Origin: Hyaloraphidium curvatum SAG 235-1
Lineage: Eukaryota; Fungi; Monoblepharomycota
Direction of reading: 5' to 3'
Assembly (NCBI GenBank): GCA_025558095.1
Contig: JAIVFI010000037.1
Coordinates: 372,001 to 436,000, forward strand
Length of the DNA stretch: 64,000 nt
The notes below the pieces were generated by a model. It saw only the letters and a list, made by a program, of their open reading frames with translations, had not been told where the DNA came from and searched no databases. Of this stretch, positions 2,695 through 38,800 are shown piece by piece (within the stretch, counting starts at the first letter, position 1; each line of letters starts with the position of its first letter). The translations under genes were made by a program, and so were the position numbers.

Positions 2695-2820
2695 ATGCCC
2701 CGGCTCGCGACGAGCATCACGTTCATGTTCGCCGACCTCCCGCTCCTCCTGCGCCCCGCCGCCGCCGCGGCCGCCGGCTTCCGCGCCGTCGACATCCAGG
2801 TGCTCGACGCCGACCCGCGC
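2695..2820 (+). pseudogene. hyi: Hydroxypyruvate isomerase, N-terminal fragment (42 codons)
   Basis: MPRLATSITFMFADLPLLLRPAAAAAAGFRAVDIQ matches the Hyi start (MPRFAANLSMMFxExPxLxRxxAAAxAGFxAVE); homology stops at about 2820. Confidence 0.8.
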
Positions 2821-3046
2821 CCGCTCCGGCCGCGAACTCGGCGTTCTCGGGAACACCGTCCTCGAGCGAGGAGATTGGCGGCGGGAGCCACGGGAAGAGC
2901 GCCAGCATGTCCTCCCCGGAGAGGTGCACCGGCGCTGGCGGCCCGGGTTGCCCAGAGGTCGGCGGCGCGTCAAGATTCCCCAGAGACACGCTGTCTCCAT
3001 CCTTGGCGGTGCTCTCCGTGTTTCCATTGGCCGCGACTGCAGGCAT
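2821..3046 (-). pseudogene. N-terminal fragment of the GRL/DUF3537-like 7TM family
   Basis: EDMLALFPWLPPP matches EDELLALFPFPP (33944 gene) and EWLVLFPTPP (21238 gene); truncated at the Hyi junction. Confidence 0.6.
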
Positions 3047-16200: not shown

Positions 16201-16524
16201 TCACCCCCCCGACGGACACGCCGTCCCGACCGTCACGTACACCCCCGCGCCCTTGAGCACGCTCCACAGCCCCACAGCCACCGTGAACGCCGTCAGCAGC
16301 AGCCCCCTCACGGCGCCGGGGCTCACGCGGAACCCGAGGAACCGCGAGCCGCACGCCTCGGCGGAGGACGCCATGGCGCGGAGCAGCCCGGACCCGCAGC
16401 TGCCAGGCTTGCCGCCGGGCTTGGCGCCCTGCTTTCCGCCCGACGCCGTCAGCTTCGCCTCCGCGCGGCTGCGGCGCCACTCGGCGAGCAGCTCCTCGCG
16501 GCTGCGCGACGCGTTCTCGTCCAT
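16201..16524 (-). pseudogene. Chimeric ORF: unrelated N-terminus fused to the C-terminal TM7 region of the GRL/DUF3537-like family
   Basis: GSRFLGFRVSPGAVRGLLLTAFTVAVGLWSVLKGAGVYVTVGTACP matches the ends of the 21238 and 33944 genes; the first ~43 aa (MDENASRSREELLAEWRR) do not. Confidence 0.7.
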
Positions 16525-21030: not shown

Positions 21031-21237
21031 GTCGCGTCGCCTTCCGTAGACGCCGTCTCCGCCCAACGGGCCACGGAGATCGGCAGCGAAGCGAATTGAC
21101 GGGGATGAGCCGCGTATTGAGGTCGAGGTGGGCCGCTTCCGCCCTCAAAAGGTTGCAATTTTCAGCGTGTTTTGATCGCGCATCGCCGCCGCATCGATCA
21201 TTTCCGGGTTCTGGGGATCTCACCGTATCCCAGCAAA

Positions 21238-22782
21238 ATGAAGGTCTTCACGCCGCGGGAATGGCTAGTGCTGTTTCCCACGCCCCCGACGGACGTCGAC
21301 CGGCGCGGCGGGCCGCCGTGCGACCCCGCCGCGGCCCTCCGCGCGGACGACCCGCTGACTTTCGAAGCGCTCGTTGCGGGGCTGCCGGACCCGCTGCTGC
21401 GCGCATCGACGGTCGCCGCGAAGAAGCTGGAGCCCTTTGCCGCCCGGGTCGTCCTCCGCTACGCGTCGTTGCTGTGCCTCGCGATGGCGCTGTACGCCGC
21501 CGCCGCCGTGTTCAACGAGGGATACTACGGCACCGCGCAGTTTGCCACGGCATTTGCGGGCTACGCGGCGTCGGCGGGCTCCTCGTCGGCTGGCTTGTGG
21601 CGACACGATTCCGTGACGGCAGCTGGGCGCAGATCTACCGGCCTTTCGGGTGCTCTTCCGACGACGGCGGAAGTTCTGAGGAGGCGCCGGCGGACGTGAG
21701 CGTGCACCCGTTCGCCATGATCACGCGGTGGCACCAGCTGGCCTTGCGCTCCCCGGCCCCCGGCGATTCCGACGACGTGGAATTGTGCGCCATCCCGGAC
21801 GCCGGCGCCCTCTTGAAGCACGATGCCGCGGACCCGGACGGCCCCTGCCCGCTCCCATCCTGCATGGGCCGCGCGCCGCGGTCGGTGGGACTGCAGAGGG
21901 TCTCGCTGGACGTCTTCCAGTGTCTCGTGGAGCTGGCCGAGTGGCTCCTGTTCGTTTACTCGCCGGCGGTCGTTCTCGGGCGGCGCATCTGGACATCCCC
22001 GTGGGCGGCCCCCATTGCCGCCGTATACTGTGCGTGTGCTTGTTTGGCCGCTTCCGCCTCCGCGCCGAGTCTGACTGACGCCGCCCCGCACGCGCTCGCC
22101 AGTTTCCGTACTCGTAGTGCACTCGGCGGCGACGACGTTTGCACGCAGGATGACCACGCTGTCGGCCCTCACCCTCGCCCGCAAGCTGCACCACCGGGCG
22201 GTCAAGCTCGCCCTGGACGATCTCCTCCGGCGGTGCTCCTCGCCCCCGGGCCCGTCCGATCCGACCCCGGACGACGCCTACGTCCGCCTGCACTGGTCGC
22301 TCGTCTCGACCTACACGACGCAGCTTCGCTGGCTCTCGCACGGCAAGGGTCTCATCATCGCCTCCATCTTCCTCTTCGTGGCCTGCGCGGCCGCCAACGC
22401 CGCCGTCGGCGGGTGCGTCCCTTCCTACTACGTCTACATGGTGTGCTACCTCTGCCTCTTCCTCTCGGAATCCATGTCCTTCGTCGCGGTGTGGAACCGC
22501 AGCATCGCCTCGGTCGCAGAGATGTACCGCGACGCCGAGGCCCGCCTGGTTATGCTGGAAACCCCCTCGGGCACCCCCGGGGCGCTGGAGCGGCACGGCC
22601 GGCTGCTTGGGCTGCTCCGGGGGGGGATTGCCGCGCGGCAGGGGCGCTGGCTGGGGTTCACGGTGGGGCTGGCGACAGTCAGAACGTATCTGGCGACGCT
22701 GTTCACCGTGCTGCTGGGTATGTGGACGCTGCTGAGGGGCGCGGGGATACGGTTCGTGGCGGATTCGGTGTGCCCCGGGTGA
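21238..22782 (+). CDS. GRL/DUF3537-like 7TM protein (one frameshift near 21620, one intron near 22031-22102)
   Basis: Colinear homolog of the 33944 gene from LVLFPTPP to RWLGFTVG..TVR...LGMWTLLRGAG...CP. Confidence 0.7.
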
Positions 22783-22866
22783 CCCTACCTTACGGGGTTG
22801 CGGTGGACGGAGAGGGTGTTGCAGAGTTAGGATCTTTGTGCGGGCCATGCTTTCTTGAGGGAAGGA

Positions 22867-24171
22867 TCACACGATGTTGCGCTCGAACTCCTTCCTCCCC
22901 TCGGCCACCCTCGTCACCGCGAACCTAGACAGGTCCAGGTCCACGTACTTGCCGTGCACCAGCAGCTCCGCCACCGCCCTCCCCTGCGCCGGGGAATGCT
23001 GCAAGCCGTGCCCCGACGACCCCGCCGACACCACCAGGTTGTCCAGATGCGCGGGGCGGCCGATCAAAAGGTTGTGGTCGTGTGCGTTGACCTCGTACCA
23101 CCCCGCCCACGCGGACTGCAGGCGCAGCTCGGCAAACGCGGGGACGCGCGCGGCGAGGAGGGGCCACACCCTGTCGTTGAAGTAGTCGGCGTCGGCCTGG
23201 CTGTCCGCCGCGAAGCTCGACACGTCGTCCGGGTCGAAATCGGGGTCCTCGTCCTCGGGCGGGGACAGGCCGCCGATAAAGGTGTCCGGGAACCCCTCGC
23301 GGCGGAAGTACACCCCCGTCGGGTCGATCAGCAGCACGTTGCGGGTGACGTCGGCGCGCTGCTGCGGTGTGTGCGACGCGAAGCCCGGTGCTTTCCAGAC
23401 GTAGACCACGCGGCGCCGGGCAAAGACGGGGAGCTCGAACCCCGCGCGGGCGGCGAGGGGGCGGGACCACGCGCCCGCGGCCAGCACGGCGTGGGTGCAG
23501 TCCAGCCTAGACTCCTTGCCCGCGGGGTCGCGCACGACGACGAACTTGACCTCCCTCCCGGAGACGTCAAAGTCCACCGCGCCAGCGCGGACGAACTCGA
23601 CGCCCAGCTGCGCGCACCGCTCCCTCAGGCGGGCGCAGAGCATGTGCGCGTCGAGGAAGCCCTCGTCCGCGAGGCCCAGCGCGCCGGCGGTGAGGTCGTC
23701 CGCAGAAAGCCAAGGGAAGCGGGCGGCGAGCTCGACGGGAGAGTCGAGGAGGGCGACGCGGGCCCCGGCGGCCCGTTGCACCTGCTCGTTCTCGCGGAGG
23801 ACCGCGGCGCCGTCTGCCGAGCCGGCCAGGAAGAGATATGCGCCGTCCCGCCACCACGGTGCCCGTGATTGCTGGCTTTTTGGTTGCCTGGGGTCCCCGG
23901 TAGCCGTCACAGAGAGCTCCATCGACGCGTCCGGCTTCGACAGGAACCGCGACGACCGCACGCTCATTGCCACGTTCTCCGGCAAGGAAAACTGCACGCG
24001 ACACGATGCGGCACTCCTTAAAGAGGAAGCCCTCTCGCCGGCCGGGCCGTCGGGGTCCACGATTCTGATCCTCCGGGGGCCGGGCGCGAGCAGCGCGAGG
24101 TGCAGGGCCGAGAAGAGGCCGACCGCCCCGCTCCCGCAGATCACCACGTCGAGCGCCTTCCGGGACGCCAT
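22867..24171 (-). CDS. FAD-dependent oxidoreductase, FOXRED1/DAO family
   Basis: DVVICGSGAVG, RVQFSLPEN, EGFLD, VLAAGAWS, LQSAWAGWYEVN, SGHGLQHSPA.GRAVAEL, ERNIV. Confidence 0.9.
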   Translation of the reverse strand: MASRKALDVVICGSGAVGLFSALHLALLAPGPRRIRIVDPDGPAGERASSLRSAASCRVQFSLPENVAMSVRSSRFLSKPDASMELSVTATGDPRQPKSQQSRAPWWRDGAYLFLAGSADGAAVLRENEQVQRAAGARVALLDSPVELAARFPWLSADDLTAGALGLADEGFLDAHMLCARLRERCAQLGVEFVRAGAVDFDVSGREVKFVVVRDPAGKESRLDCTHAVLAAGAWSRPLAARAGFELPVFARRRVVYVWKAPGFASHTPQQRADVTRNVLLIDPTGVYFRREGFPDTFIGGLSPPEDEDPDFDPDDVSSFAADSQADADYFNDRVWPLLAARVPAFAELRLQSAWAGWYEVNAHDHNLLIGRPAHLDNLVVSAGSSGHGLQHSPAQGRAVAELLVHGKYVDLDLSRFAVTRVAEGRKEFERNIV

Positions 24172-24338
24172 CGCGTGTTTTCGCTGCACGCAGGCCGATC
24201 GACGCGTTCCCGGGTGACGGATGCTCGACGCGACGCGTCCCGCGACGCCGATCGCCCGCCTGATCGACCTTCGCCCCCCGCCGGCCACCCGCACCCCACA
24301 CTTATCTGGCTGTCTCCCGCGGCGCCCCCGCTGCGGAC

Positions 24339-25579
24339 ATGGCCGCCCCCGCGCCCGTCGCAGATGACCCGCCGAAGAAGGCCGCGGCGGCGGCGCAGGC
24401 CGAACCCCCCGACTGGAAGGTGCTGCTCGACCCCACGGAGCTGGTCCCAATCGGGACCTGCGTTGCCGGTGCGCTGTCGCCCGCCGTCCGGCCCCTTCTC
24501 CGTCCATTTATCGGGACATTTCCGCGCAGCCGTGATCGCGTTCAACCGCTCCGAGTACGGCAAGGCGTGGTACCGCAAGTGGTTCGAGAAGATCCCCAAG
24601 GACGAGAAGCTGGCCAAGTTCCTGCTCATGAAGGTCACGGGCGACGTGGCCAACCCGATCCTATGGGGATTCAGCGCCTTCTTCACGCTCGTCGACATCA
24701 TCCGGCCCAAGTTCTTCTGGGACCGCCGCGTGCAAAAGATCGAGCCCCCCTCGCTTTGGCGCTACGCCCGCGTGTTCGCCATGTCCCTGCTCCTGCAGGG
24801 CCTGGTCAACGACAAGTTTCTGCAGCCGCGGCTGGTCTGGCCCGCGTTCCTGTGGCGCAAGGGCGCCGAGAAGGCGCGGCAGATCCCGACGGCGCTGCAG
24901 ACGCTCAAGGAGTTTGCCGTGATCTGGATGGCGTTCGATTTCCTCTACTACATCTTCCACGCCAAGATCATGCACAACAAGTACATCTGTGGGTTGATTC
25001 CCCGGGAACGCTCGGCCGCCCTGACCTCCGCCCGGCAGACAAATGGGTCCACAAGGCGCACCACGAAGCCACCACTCCCTGTGCGTTCCACCCCTTCCCG
25101 CCCCGCGATCCCTCTTACCGCCCCTCCTCCGCAGTCGTCGTCTCGGCGTACTACCAGGCCCCCGGCGAGATCGTCCTCGAGCAGGTGGCCAGCGCCCTCG
25201 TCCCCGCGCTGGTCCCCGTGCACCCGAGCACATACTGGGCCTGGGTGGCCTACAGGGTCTTCGACGGGATCATGAGCCACTGCGGGTACAACCTGCCGCT
25301 GTTCGCCATCCAGCCTTGGCACGACTACCACGTGGGTCCCCCTGTGCCGCCCGGCCCGCTTCCCGTCGCTGATTGCGGCGTGGGCAGCACCGCACCTTCG
25401 AATCCTGCTACGGCGTCACACCCGGCTTCCCCATCTGGGACTACGCTTTCGGCACTCACCGGAAATTCATGCCCTGGCTGCGCAACTACAAGAAGACGCA
25501 CCACTGGCTCACGCACGCGAGGATAGAGGAGGACGGGAAGGGGTTCAAGGACGACGAGGTGGGGGGGGAGCACCAGTGA
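24339..25579 (+). CDS. Sterol desaturase / fatty-acid hydroxylase superfamily protein (multi-exon)
   Basis: His boxes YYIFHAKIMH, KWVHKAHHE, SHCGY, HDYH|H, and WDYAFGT. Confidence 0.88.
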
Positions 25580-25702
25580 GGGGTTCGGGAAGGGTGTTGG
25601 AGAGGAGGTTTGGAGGCCGATGTGTTCCGAGAAAGTCTTTTGTGTTCGTCAACACGCCGTCTTCCATCATCACTGACGCCGCTGGAGGAAAAGCAAAACA
25701 GG

Positions 25703-26854
25703 ATGTCGGCCAACCGCCCCGAATCCTCCGGATGGCCGCCGGAAACGGTCGACTACTTTGCCGACCGCGCTTGTGCGTTCCTCGGCGCCGCGGAGGTCGC
25801 CATGGACGCGCTGTTCTCCTTTGCGGGGCGCCCGGCGCCCGCGGACAAGGAGGCTTTCGACGCGGCCGCGGAAAACGCCTGGAACGCCACCATGGACGCG
25901 GTCATGGCGCTGTACACGTTGCAGGATCCGGGCCGCTTCGCACCGCAAACGTGGGCCGCGCGTCTGGGATCCGTGCCTCAAGGGCCGGCGCCGGGGCACC
26001 TTACAGGGAGGGCGGCGCTCCGCATCTTCCGGGAGAAGTGGCACGTTCTGCGGAGGGCGATCGGCGAGTTTTCCGGGAAAGCATCGTCCGCGCGCCGAGC
26101 AGCTTGGGGAGCCGTCGGCACGGCCGAGCCCCCGCACGATGCTCTCGGCAGGCCCGCCCTGGACGCCACCCGCGGGTACAATGGCACGTTCGGTGTGCTC
26201 GCACTCGATGCGCTATCCATGCTCAAGACCATGTCGCTTCAATCCCGCCCTGTGCGTCGCCGCCTCGCCGAGTGTCCCGCTTGGCTCGATGACGTGGCAC
26301 AGTGCGCTCTGATCTTGCCCGATTTCTGGGAATTCTTCTTCGCCCGCTTTGCAGGACCCTTAGATGGCTCATCGGAGTCGCGTGCGGGGCAGGTCGGTTT
26401 CGACCTCGATGTGACGGTCGGTCTTCTATGCTCCGTCTTGAACGACAATCCGCGGCCTTGGTTTGCGCATACCCGCGCAACCGAAGAAGCCGGAACCGTT
26501 TCTGCTGCATCTGTTTTAATCCGCGGCTTGAATCGGATCTGGGAGACCTACCAGCACTACGCTCAGAATCGCGCGGAAGGAGGCGCAAAGGTGTCGAACC
26601 TTGTGGCTTCGATTGGCTTCTACGCCGAAGTCCTCGACATCGCCACCCGAAAGAAGACCGGTCCCTCCGGCCGCGACATATGGACGATTGGGGATCGGGC
26701 AGATGGGGACATGCCCGACGGATGCGACCGGTGCGGCGCGGAAGGGGAGCCCCTGCTCCGCTGCTCGGGCTGCAAGGTTACCCGCTACTGCGGGACTGCG
26801 TGCCAGCGCGAAGCTTGGAAGGAGCACAAGGCGATCTGCAGGCAGTGGACTTGA
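25703..26854 (+). CDS. MYND zinc-finger protein
   Basis: C-terminal CDRC...LLRCSGCKVTRYCGTACQREAWKEHKAIC. Confidence 0.9.
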   Translation: MSANRPESSGWPPETVDYFADRACAFLGAAEVAMDALFSFAGRPAPADKEAFDAAAENAWNATMDAVMALYTLQDPGRFAPQTWAARLGSVPQGPAPGHLTGRAALRIFREKWHVLRRAIGEFSGKASSARRAAWGAVGTAEPPHDALGRPALDATRGYNGTFGVLALDALSMLKTMSLQSRPVRRRLAECPAWLDDVAQCALILPDFWEFFFARFAGPLDGSSESRAGQVGFDLDVTVGLLCSVLNDNPRPWFAHTRATEEAGTVSAASVLIRGLNRIWETYQHYAQNRAEGGAKVSNLVASIGFYAEVLDIATRKKTGPSGRDIWTIGDRADGDMPDGCDRCGAEGEPLLRCSGCKVTRYCGTACQREAWKEHKAICRQWT

Positions 26855-27153
26855 CGCGACTCGTGCCGCTAGTTTGCGGCCGGCACTGATGGGGTTTGGT
26901 GAGATGTTGGAGGGCGGGGGAGGCCGAGGTGTACTGGTTCGATCCCTGCGCACGCCCAGAAGGCGAACGAAGTGCCTTTCTACGTTTTCCTGACTACCGC
27001 CACTGACGCCGAGGATTCTGGAACCCCCCTTCGCTTCGGGTTCGGTCGGGGTCCAGCGGGGTCCGTCGCACAGCCACTTCCCCCGAAGCTCCGGTTTGTT
27101 TCTGTCACGCCGTGCATCCCGCCATTCCCACCTACCAGCCCTCCATACCCGCG

Positions 27154-28121
27154 ATGGTCGCCGTGCACTTCACCGCCTTCGAGCCGCGCGACGGCATGGG
27201 CCCCGAGCTGGGCACCACCCTCGCCACGCTCGCGTCGAAGCTCAACGCCGCAGGCGTCCCCGGGCTCGGCCGCGCGTGGGCCGGCGTGCCGACGTACAAC
27301 GCGGACAGGGCGGCGCCGTACACCCATGGTGCGTACCCGCGTACTGGGGCCGGGATCGGGACGGGCCAGCTCATCGTTCCTGCGACCATCCTGCCTACCA
27401 GTGCTCTACATCCAGGCCGACAGCAAGCTCGCCCTCGACGACTACGAGAAGGACGAGGGGGCCGGCGGCAAGATCCGCGCTGCCGTCGCCGAGGCCATCG
27501 GGAAGTGCACCAAGGAGGCCCTGGTCGCGTCCTTCGAGCCTGAGCACCACGCCAAGGCCGGGCAGCTGATCCACCTCGTGGCCTTCGAGGTCAACCCCGC
27601 GCAGCAGGGCAAATGGTCGGCCTGAAGCCGGCTTGTAGCTGGAAAAGGCCGAATTCGCTGATCCGGGCGCTTCCGCTCGCGCAGGACCGAGGGCGCCGAG
27701 ATCGTCGAGAAGAACTCGGTCAAGGGCTCCGGGAAGCTGCCCGTGAAGGTCCTCTACGCCGGTCCGGTGACGGGCAAGGGCAACAAGCACGTGAACCACG
27801 GTGGGAAGGCGCGCCCGTTGGCACACCACCCGGATCACTGATCGTGATCGCCAGTGCTGTTCACCGAGTTCGAGTCCAAGGACGCCCTGGACAAGTACAG
27901 CCCGGCGCCGGAACACCACAAGGCCGCGCACGAGTACCTCCTCCCCGCCTCCAACAGTGGGTCCCCCGGCCGGGCACCACGATCCGTGCTGATCACCCTG
28001 CCGTCCAGGGGCCACGGTCAAGGCGTTCGACTTTGTGCCCGTGGACACACCCGTGGCCGGCGCCGAGGCGCTGCTTTCCGATCAGGACGGGGCCTGGGTG
28101 GTGGATGCCAAGATGAAATAG
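27154..28121 (+). CDS. Tandem Dabb (stress-responsive A/B barrel) protein, multi-exon
   Basis: VHFTAF...YTH|VLYIQADS..ALDDY and IHLVAF...NH|VLFTEFESKDALDKY.PAPEH; four short introns. Confidence 0.7.
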
Positions 28122-28197
28122 AGCGCGGGGGCGATCTGCTGCGGCCTCTACTCTGAATGATTGATCTCAGTCTCTACTCTGGATGATTGGTCTCAAC

Positions 28198-29234
28198 TCA
28201 AGTGCCAAAGTCGAACTTGACATTCGCCCACTCCTCGCTCTTGTCGAACACCTCCTTCATCAGCGCGGCGTCCTTCGCCAGCGGCTGCTCGTCATTCACG
28301 GCCGGGTACCCGGAGACCTTGGGCCCGCCAGGCAACCCCCACTCGGGCCCGATGTAGCTGTTCCTGGGGCACTCGGGGGCCGCGCAGGCAAACACCTGCG
28401 GCAGCGCGCCCATCTCCACCGACTGCGCCACGAACCGGTTCAGGAAGCCCCAGACGTAGTACATAACAGTCCGATTGCCGAGCCCATTGAACTGGAGGTT
28501 GGTCGCAGTGTATCCGGGGTGTGCCGCGACGCAGAAAAGTTTCGAGGCCTCGCGGCCCCCGGCGGCGTCGTCGGCGCGACGCTGAAGCTCGTGGGTGAAC
28601 AGCAGGTTGCACAGCTTCGACGTTGCGTAGGGCATGAAGTAGTCGTAGGGGTCAAAGTACGGGATCCTCTTCATGTCTTCAGCTTTGGGCCACTCGCTGT
28701 AGCCCGAAGCAATGTTGACGACGCGGGGGGAGTCGGAGGCCATGAGCAGCGGTAGGAGGTGCGCGGTGAGCGCAAAGGGGCCGATGTGGTTCGTGCCGAA
28801 CTGGTACTCGAAGCCATCCTTGGTCAGCCTGCGGTTGGGAATGTGCATGATCTAAAAGGGGAGGGATCAGGCGCTGACTCTGGTGAAGTCACGAGGAAGC
28901 CCACCCCGCCGTTGTTGCACAGGATGTCGAGCGACTTCCATTCCTTGGCGACGGTCGCGGCAAATGCCTTGACCGACGCGAGGTCCGCTAGATCCAGCGT
29001 GCCCTCCGTGACCAACTTTGCGTCCGGCACTTTGGCCCGGATCTCGTCTGCAACGGCCCGCGCCTTGTCCGTGCTGCGGCACGCGAGCCACACCTCCGCA
29101 CCCTTGCGAGCGAGCTGGAGCGCGGTTTCAAGGCCGAGGCCGGAGTTTGCTCCGGTGACAACGGCTCGTTTGCCGGCCAGCGACGGGAGGCAATCGGTCG
29201 TCCACTTTGGCGGGACAGCGGGAGCGGCAGACAT
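28198..29234 (-). CDS. Short-chain dehydrogenase, retinol-DH/WWOX-like
   Basis: [42 protein letters not shown]; one intron at about 28852-28905. Confidence 0.92.
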
Positions 29235-29531
29235 TGCGATAGAAGGGCCGTGCACGTTGGCACGTGGGGCGTGCAGGAACGGAAGATGCACGAGATTCGA
29301 TTGCGTCGTTTTCTTGTCGTGCAGTCCGAGATGGAATGTTCCCGGGCGAGAGGAATCTTCCTTGCTTCCCGCGGGCTGGTGAAACGATCCGCCGGCCGAT
29401 TCATCGCGATTATACCGCCTACACTGAATCGTCATGAAGGCCAACTACGCACCGCAATCCCCTGCTCCGAAGAAATAGACATGGTTCCCTTTCCTGCGTC
29501 CCCCAAGCGCGTGCAGCGTTCCGCAACTGCG

Positions 29532-30941
29532 TTACTCTCCGCACACACTGAGCCTCTCCAACCTCCGAAGCCGCGGCAACCAATCCTGCAGCAGCTCCGC
29601 TTCCCATTCTCCGACCGTGGGTCCGCAGATAATGGCGTCGCGAAGCCTCGGCATCCCGGCCAGGGTCCTCAGCAGCCCCTCAGTCACCCCGCACTCGACT
29701 TCGAGCTCCTCCAATCCCGACGAGGCCGCGAGCATCTTGAGCACAGATGCGAGCTCGAGGTACCCGGTCCCGAGCGTGAGCTTCCGCAGCTTGGAGGGCC
29801 AGCCGGCGAGCAGCACATCCGCAGGGTCGACATCGAGCTCCACGCCTGGATGCTGGAAGGAGCTTTCTTCAAGTATCAGCTCCGACAGGTTCGGGTTGCG
29901 GCCTAGCAGGCCCGCGAGCGACACAAAGTCGTTGTTCTCCGGCGAAGCCGAGACGTGGAGGCGCTCCAGGTTGCCAGTGTCAAAGAGGTCGGCCCAAGAC
30001 GCGTCGATGTACCATCGAAAGTTGTCGTACGGCTTCACGAGCTCAAGGGACCGCAGCGTCGCCGTGGACGGGTTGAAGCGGTACTGCCGGCGAATCCGAA
30101 GCCAGTCCTCCGTGTCGAATCCGTCGTGGATCTCAAGACGAAGGTGCTCCAGTGACTTGAGACACTGAAGAATCTCCGCAAGGTGGATTCCAAGGAAAAC
30201 AGCGCCCTCGTTGACGTGTATGGTGAGCGAACGAACAGTCGCGGGTATGTCACCGGCGATTTTGCCGCACCATCGGTCGGACAGGCCTTCGATGTGCAGG
30301 CGCAGAACGACGAGGGAGTGCATCTCGCGCAGCAAACCCAGCGCGGGCTCGCCGGCCCCGTTGGATGCGATCGCCATTTCGGCGCGAAGGACGCTGCGGC
30401 CCAACATCGACGAGCCGAGCTGCGGAAGGTCCCGCTGCGCGCGCATGGCCGCGAGCTGGTACCAGCTCGGGTAACGGCCCTGGTCCACCGGCCGCGGCTG
30501 TTACGGCCAGCTGCAAGCGCCAAAGCCCGAGTCGACGGCCGTGTCGGTGAAGACCAGGGCGCGGCAGGCTTCCCCGTAGATCGCACCCCGTGGCGACGAG
30601 AGGCCCGGGACGAACGATTGCAGATCCGACGTCTGGATGTGCCTCCAAAGGCGCGGCGCGGCCGCCGCGAACACGTCCTGGCTGACCGTGAGCAGCGGCA
30701 GCAGCGCCGCCCGGCCGGGCGAGCAGCGGCAGTTCGATTCGTGGCGGAGATCCTTGCACGCGTCGAGGGTCAGGGGACACGGGAGGAGCGCGCTGGAAAG
30801 GAGGGGACATGAATACCGCGAGAACGGGGAAGACCGGTGCACGCACTCGACGATGCGGCCCCAAATTTCGGGTGGCAGACACGTCCTTTCGCGCTGCGTG
30901 ACGACCGCCTCGACACTCGGGCCCGTCACCGGGTTCTCCAT
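29532..30941 (-). pseudogene. F-box/LRR (RNI-like) protein with in-frame TAA at 30501
   Basis: LPPEIWGRIVECV and LRR-like LxxLxL units; WP*QP aligns with WPYQP in the paralog. Confidence 0.7.
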
Positions 30942-31219
30942 GGCTTGGGCCGCGATGACGTGCGGGCAACCGAGTCGCGCTTCTTCGGGTCTTCGACGAC
31001 CTTCTCCCGCGCAAACTGCTCCTCCGCTCCAACAGCTCTGTGCAATACGTCTTGCACCGCGGCGATGCGCCGGGTAGACGCCCGTGGAAGAGCTTCTCCG
31101 AGCACCTTTCGCGCGGGACGCATGTCACGTCACGCCTGGTTCAATCACTTCTATCGAGGCTACAATCAATGTATGCGACTCCGATTGCGACTTTCGACTC
31201 CATCTAGCAATCCAAGCCA

Positions 31220-32101
31220 TCAGGCGAACTTCGCCAACGCCACATCGACCATCTCCTGCGCCAGTGCCACCAGCCTCTCCTGCCTCTCGGCGTCCAACAC
31301 AAAGTCGGACGCCCCGAAAGGCCCGTTCCTGTCCGCGAACCCCCCTTCCCCCAGCCCCTCGTCCAGCAGCAGCCTCGCGACGTCCGCGGCGGCCTGGTCC
31401 GCCGACCGCGTCCACGGCGCGAAGAAGGGCGCGAGGCCGTACCTCACCACGGCGGGCAGCTCCCTGCGAATGTCCGTGTCCACCGCCCCGGGCCCGTAGC
31501 CCCACGCCGGGCTGCCCGTGCGGTTCATCCGCGCGGCCCAGATGTCGTTTGCCAGCTGAGCAGCCCCGTGCGCGGACATCCCGGTGCCCACTCCGGCGAC
31601 ATCACGAAACTCGTTGCTGGCGTACGAGGGAACCTGACGCGCCGATGCGGCGATCACCACGGTCCTCGCCCCATCGGCGAGCGCGATCCGCGAGTGGATG
31701 GCGAACCGCGAGAGGAACGAAGAGGCAAAGTTGGCGTCCAGCCCTTCGTCCGTCGTGCGCGCCGAGGGGATGAGTGTGCCGAGCGAATGCACCACACCAG
31801 CGAACGGCCTCCCTTGCGCAGCCCTGCCCGCCTCCTCCGCCATCCTCGAAGCCTCCTTCATCTCCTTGGCATCCCCGAGCACCACGTGCAGCTTTCCCGG
31901 GCCGGAGAGGCACCGCTCGAGCAACGCGTCGGCCTTGTCCCTGCTCCGCCCAACGACGACCACGTCGTGGCCCGCGGCGACGAGCTGCAAGGCGAGGGCG
32001 GCACCGATTCCGCTGGTGGCCCCCGTAACGAGAACGGGGCCCTTGAGAGGGCGGGAGGGGTAGGGCTGCGCGCCCCAGGCGGTGCTTTGCGATTGGCCCA
32101 T
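31220..32101 (-). CDS. Atypical short-chain dehydrogenase, intronless
   Basis: VLVTGATSGIG, DEGLDANFA, PGAVDTDI; YxxxK position reads HGAAQ. Confidence 0.85.
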   Translation of the reverse strand: MGQSQSTAWGAQPYPSRPLKGPVLVTGATSGIGAALALQLVAAGHDVVVVGRSRDKADALLERCLSGPGKLHVVLGDAKEMKEASRMAEEAGRAAQGRPFAGVVHSLGTLIPSARTTDEGLDANFASSFLSRFAIHSRIALADGARTVVIAASARQVPSYASNEFRDVAGVGTGMSAHGAAQLANDIWAARMNRTGSPAWGYGPGAVDTDIRRELPAVVRYGLAPFFAPWTRSADQAAADVARLLLDEGLGEGGFADRNGPFGASDFVLDAERQERLVALAQEMVDVALAKFA

Positions 32102-32389
32102 ATCGCTTGCTGCACGGTCGGCGGAACCACGAACGGAGCTTGGAAACGAGCTGCTCCGGACGTGCTGCTTGTAGGCGGCGACGCGCAAGCTCGGAGTCCG
32201 TGCGTCATGCCACGTTGCGTGGCGTTGCGGAGGTTTCGAAAGCAATTACGAGAGAAGGTTGCACCCGTTGGTCTGGAACACACGGCCGGCCGCCGGTCGC
32301 GCCCGGGAGACAATGCAACAACAAAAGCAAATCGGCGGTCGAAATTGCAAGAGCAAGAGAGGGATCCACCAGCATGCAACGTACATCCA

Positions 32390-33874
32390 GCCTCAGCGGT
32401 CGATGACGCCCCCCGCAGTCGCGGCGTGCACTTCTCCAAGGCAGCGAACTGTTCCTTGTCGTCCATGAATACGTCCACCCCTGCCAGCTCTTCCAACACC
32501 CTGAACCTCGGCAGCCATGCCCTGAGCAGCTCCACCTCTTGGGCCCGCACCAGCTGCCCGCGAAGCCGGAGGGCGCGGAGGTGCGGGAGCCGGGCCAGGG
32601 CCCGCAGGAACGCCTCGGTGATGTTAGTATCCACCAGCACCTCCTGAAAGCCGGGCGAGGCGGCGAGCAGGCGCGGCAAGCGAATGCGATCCTCCAATGC
32701 GAGGCCCAGGAGGGTGAACTTCTGCAGCCCGGCGGTCCAGGCGGCGAGCAGAGCAGGAAAGTCCGTGTCGTCCGCAGCGCCCGCCACGTGGGGGAATGAG
32801 CCCTCCAAGTGGAGCTCCTTGAGCCCAGGGTTGCGGCCAATCAAGCTCCACAGGCTGGCGTGACCGCCTTCATCGTCTATGCCCAAGACGCGCAGCTCTT
32901 GGAGGTCGCCGGTGACAAAGAGGTCGGGCCAGGCGGCCCGGATGCTGCTTTGGAAGACCAAGTCGTCCACCTCCTCGATCTCGAGGCACGTCAGCTTTCG
33001 GGTATTGACGGGGGGCAGGCCAGCGATCCGAAGCAAGTCATTTCCATCGAAAGCATCGCGGATCCCGATCCGCAGTCGCTCCAGGCCCGAAAGCCGCCCA
33101 AGAGCCAGCGCCACATGGTACCCACGGAAGCCCGCGCCCTCGGCATGCACCGCCAGCAACCCCGCCGATTCGGGAACACTGGAGGCAATCCTGGCGCACC
33201 ACTCATCCGACAGTCCCTCGATGTGCAGGCGGAGCACCCGCAGGGAGCCCATGCCGGTCAGAATGTGGCACACATGGTCGGCGCCCCTTGCCGAGGCGAT
33301 CGCAAGCTCCGCCCGGGCGATACCGCTCCGCAGCGCAGAAACAATAGGAACGCCCATGGACGAGGACTCCACCGAGCACAAGGTCGGAAACCGACCCTGC
33401 GCGACAGGGAGCGGTTGGTAGGGCCACCTTGAGTAATCAGACAAGTAGATCGAGTCGATGTTGAGTGCCGTATCAGTGAAGAAGAGGGCACGGCAGGCCC
33501 CATAGTAAATGTCACAGCGCGGAGATGCGAGGGCCGGGATGAGCGACTGCAAGTCCGAGGTCCGGATGTGCGGCCACAGGCGACGGGCGGCGGTCTCGAA
33601 GAGGTCCCGGCTGGCCGTCAAGAGCGAGAGAAGCGTGGCCCTGTCGGTAAAGCAGCTGCACCATATTTTGCTACGCAAGTCTCTGCACGCTTCGCCGGTC
33701 AGGGAGCACGGGAGCAGGGCACTGGAGGCCAGGACGTCGGGGATGAGCTGGCGTTCCGAGAGGTGTGAACAACACGCACTCGACGATCTGCCGCCAAATC
33801 TCGGGCGGGAGACGCGTCTTTTGCTGCTCGGTGTCCGTTGCATGCTCGCCGGCCGGCGTTCCGGGGGTCTCCAT
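32390..33874 (-). CDS. F-box/LRR protein, paralog of 29532-30941 (frameshift near 33770; 3' end uncertain)
   Basis: RLPPEIWRQIVECV in one frame, then SSALLPCSLT...RLWPHIRTSDLQS...LRLHIEGLSD shared with the paralog. Confidence 0.7.
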
Positions 33875-35817
33875 CGCGTGCAGCGTGAAGTGTTTGCGGC
33901 GGAGCTGCGTGCGAATCGCGTGTGCCACCGTTCACCTCTCGCGATGTTCCCGCCGCCCGAGTCGCTGGAGCAAATGGAGGACGCCGCGTTTAATGCCGCT
34001 CCGAAACGGTCGTGGGACGGGACCGCCCTGCCCCGGTCGCGCAAAGTCGAGGATTATGCCGAGGACGAACTCCTCGCTCTGTTCCCGTTCCCGCCGGCCA
34101 ACCCGCGGTCGCCCGACCCCGCCGCGGCGGCGCGCGCCGCCGACCCGCTGGACGGCCCGAAGCTGCTCGCCGGGCTCAGCGACGGGCTGCTGCGCGCGGT
34201 GACGGCGCCGGAGGTGTGGTGGCCGGTGCCGCGCTCCGTCGAGTGGGGCGCGGGGGCGCTGCAGTTCCTGTGCATGGCGGTGCTGTACCCGACGGCTGGC
34301 GTGCTGCTCAACGACGGGTACTTTGAGACGCCGCAGCTGGCTGCGGGGATCGTCGCCATGACGGTCGGGTCCTTGTATGAGACCTCGCGCCTGACGTCCC
34401 TCACGGTGGCCTTCCGCCGGATCGAAAAGAAAGACAGGTCGCTTGATCCGTACTCCATCGGCTGGAACTCTCTCGGGATTATGGTTCGGCGCCAGCGGCT
34501 GATTGCGGCCCGCGAGGACGGTGGCCCACGGAGCCCCCTCGTCGAGCACAGGGACGAGGATGGCCCTCTTTGCACTTGTCCCCTACCGCGTTGCTCGGGC
34601 TCCATACCCAGGGCTGCGGCTTGGACCCGGCTATTCGTGACCCCCGCGTACAGCCTTGTTTTCTTTTTCCTGGCCGTAATTATGGACAACTGGACGCTCC
34701 TCGTTACCTGGGCCCCGCGGATTTGGGCACACTGGTGGTCAACCATGCTGATGGCGCTGCTCCTTGCTGGAGGAGCCTTTCTCAACTTTGTGGCGGCCTT
34801 GTTCTATCAGAACTATATCGGACCGCAGAACTACAGCAACGAGGTGTTGCGCAGGATGCGGAGGCGCGCGCTGGCGGACGCACTGGAATCTCTGCTTGCG
34901 CGTGCAGCGGCAGCCATCAAGCTTGCTGCAGAGGGCGTTTTGCCATCGGACCTGGACCCGGCTGAAGAGGAGGGCTATGTGTGGCTGCACGCGCGGTTCG
35001 CGGAAGCGTGGAACTCCGCAGCACACACTTCCTGGTATTCCACGTTCGTTGTACCCCTGGCCATCTGTTCGTTCTGCGCAGCCGTCGTCAACATGGTGGG
35101 TCGGTGCCCGGGTCGCCCATCTCCGCCGCTCATCCGCGCACACCAGATCGCCGGCTCTTGCATCACCGGCCTGGCCTTTTCCACCGCCCTCATCGCCGTC
35201 CTCATTTCCGCGGTGGCGCTCAACAACGCTGCCTCCGTGAACCGCCGCCTCTTCGACGCCAAGGCGCTGTACCTCTCTTCCCGCCAGAAGCTGCGGTTCC
35301 TCGCCGCGCGGTGCATCCCCACGCGCCCTTCCGACCCCCGGTGGTCCGTCGCGGAATACCTCCGCGCGCACGACGCCGCGCTGAGCGGGTGCATCGCCGA
35401 GGCCGAGGCGGGGGGCGCGAGGCTGCTGGGGTTCGCGGTGGGGGAGGGCACGGTGAGGGCGGTGATCGTCACGACGGTGACGCTCGCGGTGGGGCTGTGG
35501 AGCGTGCTGAGGGGCTTGGGGATCAGGGCGACGCTCGATTTCGCCTGTCCGGCGGTACAGTGAGGACGATTTCTTGGAGCAGACCCTCAGGTGGTGTCGG
35601 TTTGTCGGCTCTTTTCTGGGCCTTGGATGTATCTGCTGCCAAATGTTGGGCGGAAGACGCGCTTTCTGCTTCTCTGCATTTGCTGCCTCGACGGCGTGGT
35701 CCGCTCCGGGGGTCTGACTGTGTGTGCGGCGCATGCCGGAGGCGGCTGCGAAACGCGTCGTCGCCCCTTATTCACCTCCTTCTCCCACGCGATGTTCCCG
35801 GCGCCCGAGTCGCTCGA
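33786..35817. repeat. Diverged ~185-bp direct repeat (33786-33969 and 35631-35817) flanking the 7TM gene
   Basis: Shared ATCTGCYGCCAAAT..GGGCGGRAGACGCG, TCCGGGGGTCT, TTCACCTC and CGCGATGTTCCCGSCGCCCGAGTCGCTSGA. Confidence 0.85.
33944..35563 (+). CDS. GRL/DUF3537-like 7TM protein, intact, with one in-frame 51-nt intron (35096-35146)
   Basis: Seven hydrophobic segments; TM6 ends in AASVN, followed by RLLGFAVG..TVR...GLWSVL. The CDS is secure; the family assignment is inference. Confidence 0.75.
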   Translation: MFPPPESLEQMEDAAFNAAPKRSWDGTALPRSRKVEDYAEDELLALFPFPPANPRSPDPAAAARAADPLDGPKLLAGLSDGLLRAVTAPEVWWPVPRSVEWGAGALQFLCMAVLYPTAGVLLNDGYFETPQLAAGIVAMTVGSLYETSRLTSLTVAFRRIEKKDRSLDPYSIGWNSLGIMVRRQRLIAAREDGGPRSPLVEHRDEDGPLCTCPLPRCSGSIPRAAAWTRLFVTPAYSLVFFFLAVIMDNWTLLVTWAPRIWAHWWSTMLMALLLAGGAFLNFVAALFYQNYIGPQNYSNEVLRRMRRRALADALESLLARAAAAIKLAAEGVLPSDLDPAEEEGYVWLHARFAEAWNSAAHTSWYSTFVVPLAICSFCAAVVNMVGRCPGRPSPPLIRAHQIAGSCITGLAFSTALIAVLISAVALNNAASVNRRLFDAKALYLSSRQKLRFLAARCIPTRPSDPRWSVAEYLRAHDAALSGCIAEAEAGGARLLGFAVGEGTVRAVIVTTVTLAVGLWSVLRGLGIRATLDFACPAVQ

Positions 35818-38800
35818 CCCCGCGGCGGCGCTGGGCGCGCTCTCGGCGGCGCTGTCGGCGGTGTCCGCGGGCGGCGGCGGGTCTGCGGGCGGCGGCGGGT
35901 TCGTCAGCGCGCGGTCGCTCGCGGCGGCGCGGTCGGGCGCGGACGCAAAGGGCGCGGCGTCGGCCGACGCGCAGGCGTTCCTCTTCGCGTGCCAGGCGCA
36001 GAAGTGGATGTGGGGCGTCGCCGCGCGGGGGCTGCTCGCGTTCGCGGACGCGGCTTCGCACTCGGCCCCGGGCGCGGCAGACGAGGCGCTGGCGTTCTAC
36101 CTCGCGGGGGCCCTGGCATTCCGGATGCGGAACAACGCCCCCGATCTGATGGCAGACAGCGACGCGGACGCCGATTTGGAGGGGCTGTCGGGCGACGGCT
36201 GGGCCGTGGTGCGGGACGCGGCAGGGACCGCCACCAGGCTGTGGGGGCCGTCGAAGGTCGTGGCGCGGAAGCTGATTCTCGGCGTGGGTGGCACCTGGTT
36301 CTCACGATTTGCATGCTCTGACTGCCGGTCGATCCCGCCACTTGGATGCCGGAAACAGCTCATTGCCCTGCTCCACCACCCGTCGCTCCCGAACGACCCG
36401 CCGCCGCTACAGCTGCTCCTCTCGCTCGTGCTCGCGCGGTCGGCGGACGCCCCACTCGGGCCGATACCCGCGTTCGAATCGCTGCCGCCCGAGCTGCAGT
36501 CGCTGTGCCTCGAGACCCTCCGGCTCACGGGCGAGCACCTCGCCGCTGACGCCGTCCACCCCTCCAAGAAACCCTCCTCGGAGCACCTCTCGGCCGCCGT
36601 TTCCCTCCTTGCCTCGGCGCTCGCCTCCCCCGCCACCCGCATCCCCGCGCTGGACGCCCTCTCGGCATTCCTCGGCTCCTCCTCCCTCATCCGCGACGCC
36701 GGCAGCGACGGCCCCCCGCTGATCGCCTCCTCCGACGCTGCCGCCCTCTTCCCCCGCCTCCTCGCCCTCCTCGCCGACCCCTCCCTGGACGAAGACGCCG
36801 AGCAGCGCGCCGCGGACCTCGCCGACGCCCTCTGCGTCCGCGTCCCCGCTTCGTCCGCCCTCCCCCTCGCCGCCTCCCTCGCACCCTCCATCGCCGCCGC
36901 CTCGTCCGCCCGCGGCGGCTTCCCACACGCCGTCGGCGCGCTCTTCTCCGCGCTCGCCCGGTTCCCGGACCGCACACTGGCCGCGCTCTCCCGCGCAGAC
37001 GCCGAGGGCGACGGCGTGCGGTGGATCCTCTCTGCGGCATGCGACCTCCTCGGGCGCACCGTCGAGGCCGGAATCACGGAGGAAGAGGCCGAGGAGGGCG
37101 ACCCGAGCACGCTGCCGGCGCCCATGTTCCAGGACCTGCTGGAGCACCTCGCCGGCCTGGAGGCCGGGGACCCGGCGGTGCAGGCGTTCGCGCCCGTGGC
37201 GGCGGTGCTGGTGGAAAGGGCGATGGCGAGGGGGATGTGCCCCGAGGGGTGGAAGAAGTGGAACGGAGGTGCGCCGCCGCGGTGCGCCGCCGGTTCCTCC
37301 GATTGCTGAACCGGAACGTCCCGCTCGGCCCACAGAAAAGAAGCGCCATCACATCTCCAACCTCCGCCCCGCGCTCACCGACATCCTCTGCGCCCTGCCC
37401 CCCGCCTACTCCACCTCGTACCTCCTCCCATCCGCCCTCGCCGCCCTCCGCGCCGGCCGCGCCGGCATGGCCGCCGGCGATCCCTCCGCCTGGCGCACCT
37501 TCGAATGCGGCGCCTGGGTCCTCGGACACTGCGCCGAGTCGCTCCCCGTCGCCCCCGAGACCTCGCGCGCGGCGGCGGAGGCGCTGGCGATCGTCTCCGA
37601 AGCATGCGCGGGGATGCTGGCCGCCGTGCGGGCCGAGGGGAGGATGGGGCAGGAAGCCCACCGCGCGGTGCAGAGCGCGCTGGATGCTTGCGGGTATCTT
37701 GCGGAAAGGGAGGGGCTGCTGGACGCGCAAGGGGTGGCGGGGGCGGCCGGCACGGCGGCGGGGGCGCTCGGGTTCCCGGCCGTTGCGACGAGGGCGGCGG
37801 AGAGGTTCCGCGCGGTGTGCTTGGCGCCGGGGGCGGACGCGCTGGTGCCGCTGCTGCCCGCGCTGGCGGAGGCGGTGCGCGCTGCCGGGCTCGGGGGGAG
37901 GGAGCTGGGGATGGCGGCCGAGGGGCTGGCGGGGGTCGTCGCGCGGGATGCGTCGGGGGCGCCGGGGGTCGTGAGGGCGGTGCTGGAGATGCTGCTGCAA
38001 CGGGTGGTCGGCGGGGCGGCGAACGCGGCGGCGGGGCAGGGGTACGAGGGGCTGAGGGAGGGGTTGGGGCAGCTGGCGGGGTTCCTGAGGGGTTTGGGGA
38101 CTGCGGAAAGTGGGGCGGTCGAGGTGGACCTGACGGGGGACGACGACGGGGTGCCGGAACCCTCGAGGCGGTTCGTCAGGAACGCGGCGGAGCATGGGAA
38201 TGGGGGCGAGGCGATGGCAAAGGCCAAGACGGATCCGGCGACGCGGGTGCTGGTGGACGGCACGTGGGTCGCCATGGAAAAGGTCGGCGAGCTGGTGCAC
38301 GGGTTCGGGAAAGTGGGGCGGGAGGAAGAAGAGGTGCTTGAGGTGGGCTCTACGTAATCCGAAGTTGGGTTACGGGCGCTGATTGGCCTCATCGTCGGGC
38401 AGTCGCTCTGCGGGCTTCTCCTCGTGCTCCTGCGCCACTCGTCGCCCGCTCTGCCGCTCTCCGTCAGCCACAGGGAGCAGCTGGCACTGCTCATCATCCG
38501 CATGCTCTCGTCCTTCCCTTCCGTCTCCAAGGTCTACGAGGTTGCCGCCGCGTGGATCACCCACCGGCCGCCGGCCGAGCTCCTCCCGCAGAGCGAGGCC
38601 CGCGACACCCTGGACGTCGTCGCGACCGCCACCGCCTCGGCCACGCGCGTGCTCACCTCCGACGACGGCATCCGGCACAACCCGGACGTGATCCAGGCCT
38701 TCTTTTCCCTCCTCTCGCGCTGCCTGCCGGACCCGACCTCGCAGGCCGCCCTGGCGGGCATGCCGGGCAACCTCCTCGACCCGCTCTTCCTCCGCCTGAT

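Follow-up and report, generated by a model that had tools for sequence, protein, structure and literature searches.

The closest described counterparts of the proteins reported here are the insect odorant and gustatory receptors (OR/GR), including Orco, MhOR5 (7LIC), AaegOR10 (8V02), AgamOR28 (8V3D), BmGr9 (8VC1), Gr43a (8JM9) and Gr64a (8JME), which belong to the 7TMIC (OR/GR/GRL) superfamily. Non-animal 7TMIC/GRL genes have been counted at one in each of two Spizellomyces species, the chytrid SpunGRL1 and SpalGRL1, and at six in Thecamonas, and plant DUF3537 (PF12056) families hold 4-12 members (Benton et al., 2020, PMC7746228).

In this study, we analysed a window of 64,000 nt from the fungus Hyaloraphidium curvatum SAG 235-1 (contig JAIVFI010000037.1, positions 372,001 to 436,000), and we conclude that it carries members of a hugely expanded, sequence-orphan new branch of the known 7TMIC superfamily, the link to which is structural and predicted from models. 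An expanded family had been proposed from the window alone, and at least 280 non-redundant annotated proteins of this species belong to it, with a mean identity of ~25% among paralogues; it appears to be the largest 7TMIC family seen outside animals. Genome searches returned 682-895 first-look candidates, and ~85 candidates were scored per search, all of them significant. In the literature searched, 7TMIC papers make no mention of Hyaloraphidium, and we found no publication describing such a family in it.

Compared with the insect OR/GR proteins, to which it has no detectable sequence similarity, the family is ~100 residues longer, possesses a conserved cytosolic N-tail of ~95 aa and a first inner loop of ~79 aa with an invariant H/C/C/C motif, carries an invariant outer cysteine pair, and resides in a unicellular, non-flagellate fungus. 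The animal GR/GRL TM7 motif T-Y-h-h-h-h-h-Q-F is absent, with at most its T kept as judged by eye; SpunGRL1 and SpalGRL1 likewise retain only one of four TM7 motif positions (PMC7746228). These chytrid proteins resemble the present family in being fungal, of chytrid grade (the host having been correctly placed among fungi by the original prediction) and of GRL-type 7TM topology. Going by their description, they differ in being single-copy per genome rather than present in hundreds, and in having been detected through sequence similarity to GRL/DUF3537, a link which is missing here (PMC7746228).

Family genes in the window

An HMM of the family, based on 91 members, matched the window at exactly four places, namely two full-length genes (A and B), a C-terminal relic and an N-terminal relic, which are the four loci picked out beforehand at 21238, 33944, 16201 and 2821. 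Gene B (33944-35563, + strand; 522 aa) is intact, transcribed and spliced, and is a single ORF apart from one intron of 51 nt. Exon 1 (33944..35095, residues 1-384) encodes the cytosolic N-tail and TM1-TM5, the GT..AG intron (35096..35146) lies in frame within the TM5-TM6 outer loop, and exon 2 (35147..35563, residues 385-522 plus the stop) encodes TM6, TM7a, the hairpin, TM7b and the C-tail. The HMM match spans 34031-35554(+) and HMM positions 6-499 (E 1e-123). Exon 1 is identical to the annotated protein P0152 (KAI..., DFJ74DRAFT_712991) apart from the intron, and the spliced gene B protein equals P0152. A transcript contig (run X1) skips exactly these 51 nt, and the intron position is the same in the paralogue C37:205992-207572 and in a relative's gene (L031:5987-6060).

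Both genes had been taken as full-length, which holds; gene A (21238-22782, + strand) is a paralogue with one intron, which is not cleanly intact and bears an apparent 1-nt frameshift. When its pieces were searched frame by frame rather than as one joined protein, the HMM matched 21229-21600, 21630-22055 and 22105-22779(+) in frames 1/0/1, jointly covering HMM positions 8-499. The first coding stretch (21238..21583, frame 1; HMM 8-134) holds the N-tail, TM1 and the start of TM2, and the second (21584..22029, frame 0; HMM 146-267), also matched by tblastn with P0111 residues 30-174, holds the rest of TM2, the H/C/C/C loop, TM3 and TM4. Next come a predicted 73-nt intron (22030..22102, GTGCGT...CTGAC...CAG) and the last exon (22103..22782, frame 1; HMM 260-499, E 3e-55), with the cytosolic helices, TM5, TM6, TM7a/7b and the stop. 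The second frame change corresponds to this putative intron, the removal of which makes the spacing match P0111 exactly (21 vs 21 residues). At the first, around 21571-21583, alignment to P0111 gives 116 nt vs 117 expected, leaving no room for an intron, which points either to a frameshift of 1 nt or to an indel in the assembly. Genes A and B share 25% identity over 235 residues (E 5e-11), in line with their description as strongly diverged.

Topology and predicted fold

Family-mean hydropathy displays the seven hydrophobic segments that had been read from the sequence. The positive-inside rule places the N-terminus in the cytosol in 91/91 members, as anticipated, with 12.6 near-membrane K+R on the N-terminal side vs 2.0 on the other. 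Inner loops measure 79, 73 and 65 aa on average, as against 11, 14 and 7 aa for the outer loops and 14 aa for the outward C-tail; intracellular loops are longer than extracellular ones, as in other 7TMICs (10.1101/2023.08.30.555482; PMC7746228), and the predicted arrangement has an intracellular N-terminus and an extracellular C-terminus. Members are mostly 480-540 aa long, and the length used in screening for 7TMICs is about 350-500 aa (PMC7746228); the N-tail and first inner loop account for the excess.

The predicted fold comprises seven TM helices with OR-like packing. In the model, TM4-6 extend into the cytosol (H264-291 + H296-329, H344-359 + H363-387, H392-439), as expected of an anchor domain, and TM7 is split into TM7a (H448-472), a hairpin with strand residues 476-477/480-481, and TM7b (H484-507). 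Short model helices at 61-66, 71-77 and 81-91 precede TM1 in a region of low hydropathy, which bears on the question of a TM0 re-entrant loop, and structural alignments to ORs begin at model residues 67-84 vs chain residues 1-12.

In a structure search against 48,161 solved chains, OR/GR representatives occupied ranks 1-7, all eight of them fell within the top 10-12, and 78-93% of the target chains was covered; the superposition on OR/GR structures put forward at the outset is therefore borne out at the level of the model. One might object that an unrelated fungal seven-helix bundle superposes on OR/GR by chance. Such convergence seems quite improbable to us, because the match lists from these chains contain no further 7TM family, be it GPCR, rhodopsin or PAQR, and because several unusual, independent features coincide: the topology is inverted, inner loops are long and outer ones short, TM4-6 reach into the cytosol, TM7 is split and has a hairpin, TM7b is the conserved element, and the predicted oligomer interface is of the anchor type.

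That interface comes from a tetramer prediction with four copies of residues 280-522, which scored 0.68 (runs 0.63-0.72) vs 0.00 for the best control, and which may reflect memory of solved OR/GR tetramers. In calibration, the tool marks 21/30 solved homomers and 0/23 monomers. Partner pLDDT lies near 60, with agreement between runs in >=70% of contacts. In the predicted ring, each copy has two neighbours, and residues 423-445 meet residues 445-472 of the adjacent copy, through the TM6 extension and TM7a.

Sequence relationships

In sequence, the family stands apart. Pfam 7tm_6 (PF02949), 7tm_7 (PF08395), Trehalose_recp and DUF3537 (PF12056) gave no match to genes A and B at E<=10, and 0/91 members matched any of them at E<=1. 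PF12056 and PF08395 had no match in the genome either, which says little as control genomes were silent too, and the family profile met only chance-level hits among PDB sequences (VMA21, E 0.18; opsin, E 1.7). Among protein-language-model neighbours, DUF3537 clusters (0.91, 7/30 hits; 0.88) and 7tm_7 clusters (0.86) were found, a weak lead only, since the recognition values of 1757 and 1523 lie below the level at which such scores carry weight. Plant DUF3537 proteins share the superfamily architecture and are among the nearest named neighbours, yet the PF12056 HMM matches none of these proteins. The likeness to OR/GR/GRL/DUF3537 originally suggested stands at superfamily and fold level, and membership in Pfam DUF3537 or 7tm_7 is not supported by sequence. 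Neither Pfam nor sequence searches with the known families detect these proteins, an example of the extent to which the 7TMIC superfamily may be overlooked.

Conserved motifs and proposed function

The motifs quoted before the family was assembled all recur in its consensus: R304/R308/A309...Y345..L348-H349 between TM4 and TM5; the invariant N416 after TM6 (ASVN in gene B, AVWN in gene A); and, in the last helix, LGFxV...R488...T496...GLWSxLRG. TM7b (35444..35515, + strand; residues 484-507; consensus RTxxVTxxTLxVGLWSxLRG), which OR/GR structures suggest by analogy as a candidate pore helix, shows the strongest conservation of all segments, its column entropy of 1.59 bits being the lowest vs 2.7-3.1 bits for TM1-TM6. 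G479 is present in 99% of members, and the N-tail also has a conserved motif. The H202-x3-D206-x3-C210-x-C212-x4-C217 motif of gene B (34547..34594, + strand) lies in the first cytosolic loop, between TM2 and TM3 by positive-inside analysis; its H and three C are invariant in 91/91 members and its D is kept in 97%, and it is likely a zinc site. On the outer face, an invariant cysteine pair in the TM5-6 loop and the C-tail is likely a disulfide. With the former inside and the latter outside, both agree with the computed N-in, C-out topology.

Together with homology to OR/GR, we infer a pore, ligand gating and a chemosensory role. Each subunit would cross the membrane seven times with its N-terminus in the cytosol, and TM4, TM5 and TM6 would run on as long cytosolic helices which, with cytosolic TM7a, form an "anchor" bundle joining four subunits into a ring. 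After the short hairpin, TM7b would line the central pore, as in the insect receptors, while TM1-TM6, the most variable segments among paralogues, may form a ligand pocket differing from copy to copy. The H/C/C/C motif and the outer cysteine pair, as putative zinc site and disulfide, are features specific to this family. By analogy, a conserved pore helix and a variable pocket point to a repertoire of ligand-gated channels, and we consider it probable, with some reserve, that this very large, old and diverse 7TMIC-fold family senses many small molecules. To our knowledge, no ligand is known for any non-animal 7TMIC/GRL protein.

Hyaloraphidium curvatum is not known to bear a flagellum or to be motile. 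Zoospore chemotaxis is consequently no obvious role, which lends some weight to the alternative that the proteins share the fold and descent of 7TMICs, but serve as channels or scaffolds in something other than chemoreception, for instance in the ion homeostasis of organelles, in sensing stress or osmotic change, in telling self from non-self, or in interactions with viruses or parasites, with conflict rather than odour-like ligands driving the expansion. The invariant cytosolic H/C/C/C motif and the conserved N-tail motif point to regulation from the cell interior. Furthermore, no function is known for many of the 7TMICs outside insects (PMC7746228; 10.1101/2023.08.30.555482), and PHTF-like class B 7TMICs share an enlarged, very long first inner loop (Himmel, Moi and Benton, 2023, 10.1101/2023.08.30.555482), which is also the longest loop of this family (79 aa); the solved chains listed by the structure search included no PHTF protein. 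We regard such another role as rather unlikely, since hundreds of paralogues at ~25% identity, with variable membrane helices and a conserved TM7b, follow the pattern of insect OR/GR repertoires, and housekeeping channels seldom expand so.

With hundreds of intact copies, purifying selection on one tandem pair and transcription of gene B, this genome would provide the first large non-animal repertoire of the OR/GR fold, would mean that massive diversification of OR/GR-type channels arose more than once, and would put at hand an intron-poor microbial gene set suited to expression, screening of ligands and structural studies. In the fullest reading, a planktonic fungus without flagella would have built up, independently, several hundred ligand-gated channels of the OR/GR fold with additions of its own, namely a cytosolic zinc knuckle in the first inner loop and an outer disulfide that ties down the C-tail. 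This would be the largest 7TMIC expansion outside animals, would mean that large chemoreceptor arrays of this fold were not invented by animals alone, and would open a microbial system for ligand-coding studies. We offer this fullest reading tentatively, and we lean slightly against the whole of it being right.

Relics and turnover of the family

The C-terminal relic (16201..16524, - strand) is a 107-aa ORF with the hairpin, TM7b and C-tail only; it matches the HMM at 16210-16389(-) over HMM 441-499 (E 2e-21), and the rest of its gene has no space, because an unrelated + strand ORF starts at 16557. The N-terminal relic (2810..3046, - strand) duplicates the first ~77 codons of the paralogue C37:205992-207572, to which it is 88% identical over 77 aa; it matches P0035 at 91.5% identity over 71 aa. 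Its HMM match (2810-2953(-), HMM 4-47) has E 1e-3, and homology ends after the N-tail.

Two relics and one frameshifted copy within this window alone, stops in some loci, and a copy with three TGA stops beside another family copy (C15:594443-595027) might suggest repeated DNA that is selfish or in decay, such as mobile-element cargo, with mostly non-functional members. We find this highly improbable: the flanks of 27 paralogous loci have no common repeat, on which ground the mobile-element idea was rejected, most of the loci scored have an unbroken reading frame of about 500 aa or longer, some of the reported "stops" fall inside introns, and gene B yields a correctly spliced transcript. One tandem pair, moreover, is under purifying selection (dN/dS 0.25). 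The expansion, the relics, the stop-riddled tandem copy and the tandem duplicates fit birth-and-death evolution, the mode suggested by the original prediction.

Linkage to the neighbouring F-box-like/LRR family was considered and rejected, with no match to it in the paralogue flanks. A metagenome scan with the C-terminal alignment gave 65 pattern matches, 0/65 of which encode a relative, a result that does not show absence. The H. curvatum genome is 32 Mb in size.

Family members in the window

The window (GC content 61–75%) is C37:372001–436000 in a 31.9 Mb, 55-contig assembly of Hyaloraphidium curvatum, a chytrid-grade fungus of the Monoblepharomycota (Hyaloraphidiomycetes). Four sites in it match the family HMM, which was built from 91 members, and they are the same four places at which the original prediction had put two full-length genes and two fragments. 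Gene B, the intact member (33944–35563, +), covers the whole profile at 34031–35554 (+), while gene A, a full-length paralogue (21238–22782, +), covers it jointly in three successive stretches within 21229..22779 (+), read in frames 1, 0 and 1. The remaining matches are a C-terminal piece at 16210–16389 (−), in a 107-aa ORF (16201–16524, −) which retains only the hairpin, TM7b and the C-tail and is directly adjoined by an unrelated gene, and an N-terminal piece at 2810–2953 (−). The latter falls in a relic, 2810–3046 (−), that copies the first 71–77 codons of the paralogue C37:205992–207572 with 88–92% identity; this paralogue is also on C37, at a distance of about 167 kb.

The ORF of gene B extends from an ATG at 33944 to a stop at 35561–35563 and is interrupted by a single in-frame 51-nt GT..AG intron (35096–35146). 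Its translation, less the 17 intron codons, is the annotated 522-aa protein P0152. Contigs of the public sequencing run X1 omit exactly 35096–35146, and also the GT..AG-bounded stretches 33722–33779 (−) and 36284–36358 (+) of neighbouring genes. Because the contigs skip such intron-like stretches, the run, whose type the tool only guessed, contains spliced RNA, which shows gene B to be transcribed and its splicing to follow the annotation.

The two frame changes of gene A have different origins. The later one, from frame 0 to 1, is due to a 73-nt intron, 22030–22102 (GTGCGT, a CTGAC branch-like site, CAG), without which residue spacing is exactly that of the closest paralogue, P0111. The earlier one, from frame 1 to 0 and close to 21571–21583, lies within continuous homology, where 116 nt are present against 117 expected and 11 profile positions fall on about 10 codons; since no intron fits there in alignments to P0111 and the family HMM, it is a 1-nt frameshift or an assembly indel.

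Size and evolution of the family

When 1.84 billion proteins, each representing one 50%-identity cluster, were searched in full with HMMER, 280 matched at E ≤ 1e-3, of which 151 also passed E ≤ 1e-10. In a sample of 20 matches, 19 are GenBank proteins of H. curvatum; a single one is called “kinase-like domain-containing protein” and the rest “hypothetical protein”. In the genome itself, first-look candidates numbered 682 with a single protein query and 895 with the profile, 80–85 of them being scored per search. Most scored matches lie in ORFs that run without interruption for at least about 500 aa, and those of the profile are all strong, the weakest full-length one still at E 1e-103. Given this uniform strength and the number of candidates, the family is well above 85 members in H. 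curvatum and plausibly several hundred. A count by eye of the matches listed gives some 110 separate loci, spread over more than 35 contigs.

Members are strongly diverged, with a mean identity of 25% among the 91 aligned. Tandem pairs are present, and one recent pair on contig C6 (77% identical, dN/dS 0.25) is under purifying selection. A family copy at C15:594443–595027 carries three in-frame TGA stops and is probably a decayed tandem duplicate, an intact paralogue (C15:597865–599079) lying about 3 kb away. Carriage by mobile elements was considered as well; the flanks of 27 paralogous loci contain no common repeat, and thus the family does not ride on a recognisable mobile element. Four annotated proteins with the family domain (P0126, P0138, P0029, P0151) are 634–1205 aa long, far above 520 aa, which may reflect gene models that were run together or genuine fusion proteins; one over-long model bears the kinase-like name.

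Topology, predicted structure and conservation

Family-mean hydropathy gives seven hydrophobic segments, as originally described. Near-membrane K+R averages 12.6 on the loops of the N-terminal side vs 2.0 on the opposite side, with the same bias in 91/91 sequences, so the proposed 7TM topology with a cytosolic N-terminus is also what these data predict. Mean loop lengths are 79, 73 and 65 residues inside and 11, 14 and 7 outside; the C-tail, which faces outward, averages 14.

AlphaFold2 models made without templates reached pLDDT 89.1 and pTM 0.88 for the unspliced translation (73 alignment rows), and pLDDT 91.7 and pTM 0.89 for spliced P0152 (91 rows). In the spliced model, TM1 (residues 97–122), TM2 (129–163) and TM3 (221–255) are followed by TM4 (264–291) with its cytosolic continuation helix (296–329), a cytosolic helix (344–359) leading into TM5 (363–387), a 48-residue TM6 (392–439), TM7a (448–472), a two-strand hairpin (476–481) and TM7b (484–507).

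TM1–TM6 are the least conserved parts (column entropy 2.7–3.1 bits), and the best conserved are the TM5–6 outer loop (1.32), TM7b (1.59), a stretch within the first inner loop (1.78) and the hairpin (1.94). The invariant H202, C210, C212 and C217 of the first inner loop, together with D206 (97%), make a candidate cytosolic zinc site, judging from conservation. C389 in the TM5–6 loop is present in 100% and C518 in the C-tail in 99% of members. Outside the hairpin, the model assigns strand only to residues 389–390 and 511–512, which must therefore pair and would place the TM5–6 loop beside the C-tail; conservation and modelled pairing together suggest a putative outer disulfide, C389/C518.

Probable relationship to the 7TMIC superfamily

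Foldseek against the PDB placed AgamOR28 first (E 0.016, prob 1.0), with BmGr9, MhOR5, Gr64a and Gr43a also in the top 25, and gave no match as strong as E 1e-3. Each model was also run through an exhaustive structural aligner, which works independently of Foldseek, against 48,161 representative chains; insect OR/GR chains took ranks 1–7 for both models. For the spliced model, scores and aligned lengths were 12.2 for AaegOR10 (346 of 375), 11.9 for ApisOR5 (296), 11.5 for MhOR5 (324), 10.7 for AgamOR28 (348), 10.1 for BmGr9 (323), 9.4 for Gr43a (299) and 9.1 for Orco (349). These alignments span residues ~70–85 to ~507, from just before TM1 through the end of TM7b, and the anticipated OR/GR-like fold is accordingly the best superposition of the predicted models. 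The three closest structures in the ESM Atlas (TM 0.53–0.54 by query, 353–395 residues) are eukaryotic clusters that carry no annotation and are represented most often in Cnidaria, Chlorophyta and Arthropoda. Language-model neighbours, of low recognition value and to be read as a lead only, include DUF3537 (0.91), several 7tm_7 clusters (0.86–0.87) and TMEM39 (0.94). TMEM39 (Pfam Tmp39, PF10271) is the top named neighbour, at 0.94 for P0152 and 0.93 for the second query, P0155, above DUF3537.

Sequence searches gave a different result. Genes A and B have no Pfam match at E ≤ 10, none of the 91 members matches 7tm_6, 7tm_7, Trehalose_recp or DUF3537 at E ≤ 1, the family profile found no OR/GR among PDB sequences, and the GR TM7 motif TYhhhhhQF does not occur in the family consensus RTxxVTxxTLxVGLWSxLRG; for these reasons the family is not filed under any of those four Pfam families. 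The suggested kinship with OR/GR/GRL/DUF3537 thus holds at the level of fold and superfamily, but not as sequence membership of Pfam 7tm_7 or DUF3537. Five structural criteria support filing the family under the seven-transmembrane ion channel (7TMIC) superfamily; as to a sixth, the re-entrant TM0, the model has short helices ahead of TM1 (61–66, 71–77 and 81–91), in a region of low hydropathy. The evidence overall supports a very large new branch of this superfamily, orphan at the sequence level and with a putative function. Benton et al. 2020 (PMC7746228) give one GRL each from Spizellomyces punctatus and S. palustris as the only fungal cases, and Himmel, Moi and Benton 2023 (10.1101/2023.08.30.555482) describe fungal 7TMICs as restricted to Chytridiomycota and Blastocladiomycota. 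Neither paper mentions Hyaloraphidium, and a search of a literature collection found no paper on such a family in H. curvatum.

Predicted tetramer and possible function

The tetramer modelling proposed at the outset predicted a ring of four: four copies of residues 280–522 scored 0.68 (runs 0.63, 0.68 and 0.72) vs 0.00 for the best control, with partner pLDDT of about 60 and at least 70% contact agreement between runs. The score was calibrated on two copies, not four, and in that calibration 21 of 30 solved homomers but none of 23 monomers reached its marks; according to the tool, a pass is possibly memory of solved complexes and means likeness, not binding. Confident contacts run between the cytosolic stretch of TM6 (423–445) in one copy and TM7a (445–472) in the next, and since copy 4 contacts copies 1 and 3 by opposite faces, the predicted arrangement is a head-to-tail ring. 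The modelled interface of TM6 extension and TM7a lies where OR subunits meet (10.1101/2023.08.30.555482).

By analogy, TM7b would line the pore, the variable TM1–6 would form copy-specific ligand pockets, and ligand binding would gate cation flow. “Chemosensory” is the least secure word of this interpretation. H. curvatum is not known to form flagellate zoospores, in which case any sensing would be for growth or for detecting nutrients or partners, and not for chemotaxis.

The family in a second organism

The single non-GenBank match in the sample comes from another organism, sequenced in run SRR26194948 (Logan pieces L031, L032 and L033). Its DNA has 53% GC, vs about 67% in H. curvatum, and is collinear with C17:366689–371599 at 67–84% nucleotide identity. 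It holds at least three family paralogues, 37–54% identical to one another, of which the one on L031 is at a non-syntenic place; as both organisms have paralogues, the family is older than their split. One of these paralogues shares gene B's intron position. This short TM5–6 loop intron occurs in a minority of paralogues (L007, L019, L026, L030, gene B and C37:205992–207572) and in the relative's L031, and is missing from most copies, which are single ORFs; its patchiness may record retroposition or intron loss during expansion.

Neighbouring genes

Genes at 29532–30941 (−) and 31858–33928 (−) are paralogues in which LRR-like repeats come after an N-terminal motif of F-box type, LPPEIW.(R/Q)IVECV, and a third F-box-like N-terminal fragment (ARLPPNIWQQI) lies at ~35590–35730 (−), just downstream of gene B. 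The gene at 31858–33928 is divergent from gene B, and its transcript contig extends to 34124, overlapping the first 180 nt of gene B. No association of such genes with other 7TM paralogues was seen in the flanks of the 27 paralogous loci. Elsewhere in the window, a 428-aa ORF (14601–15887, +) consists of about 4–5 tandem copies of a unit of ~85–90 residues (...FFGGSIPASFFPVLRGALLDVPAGNPVARQNALRAALLEGDLGELVAMLEAAGAVTGLSALLGRMAAAEAG...).
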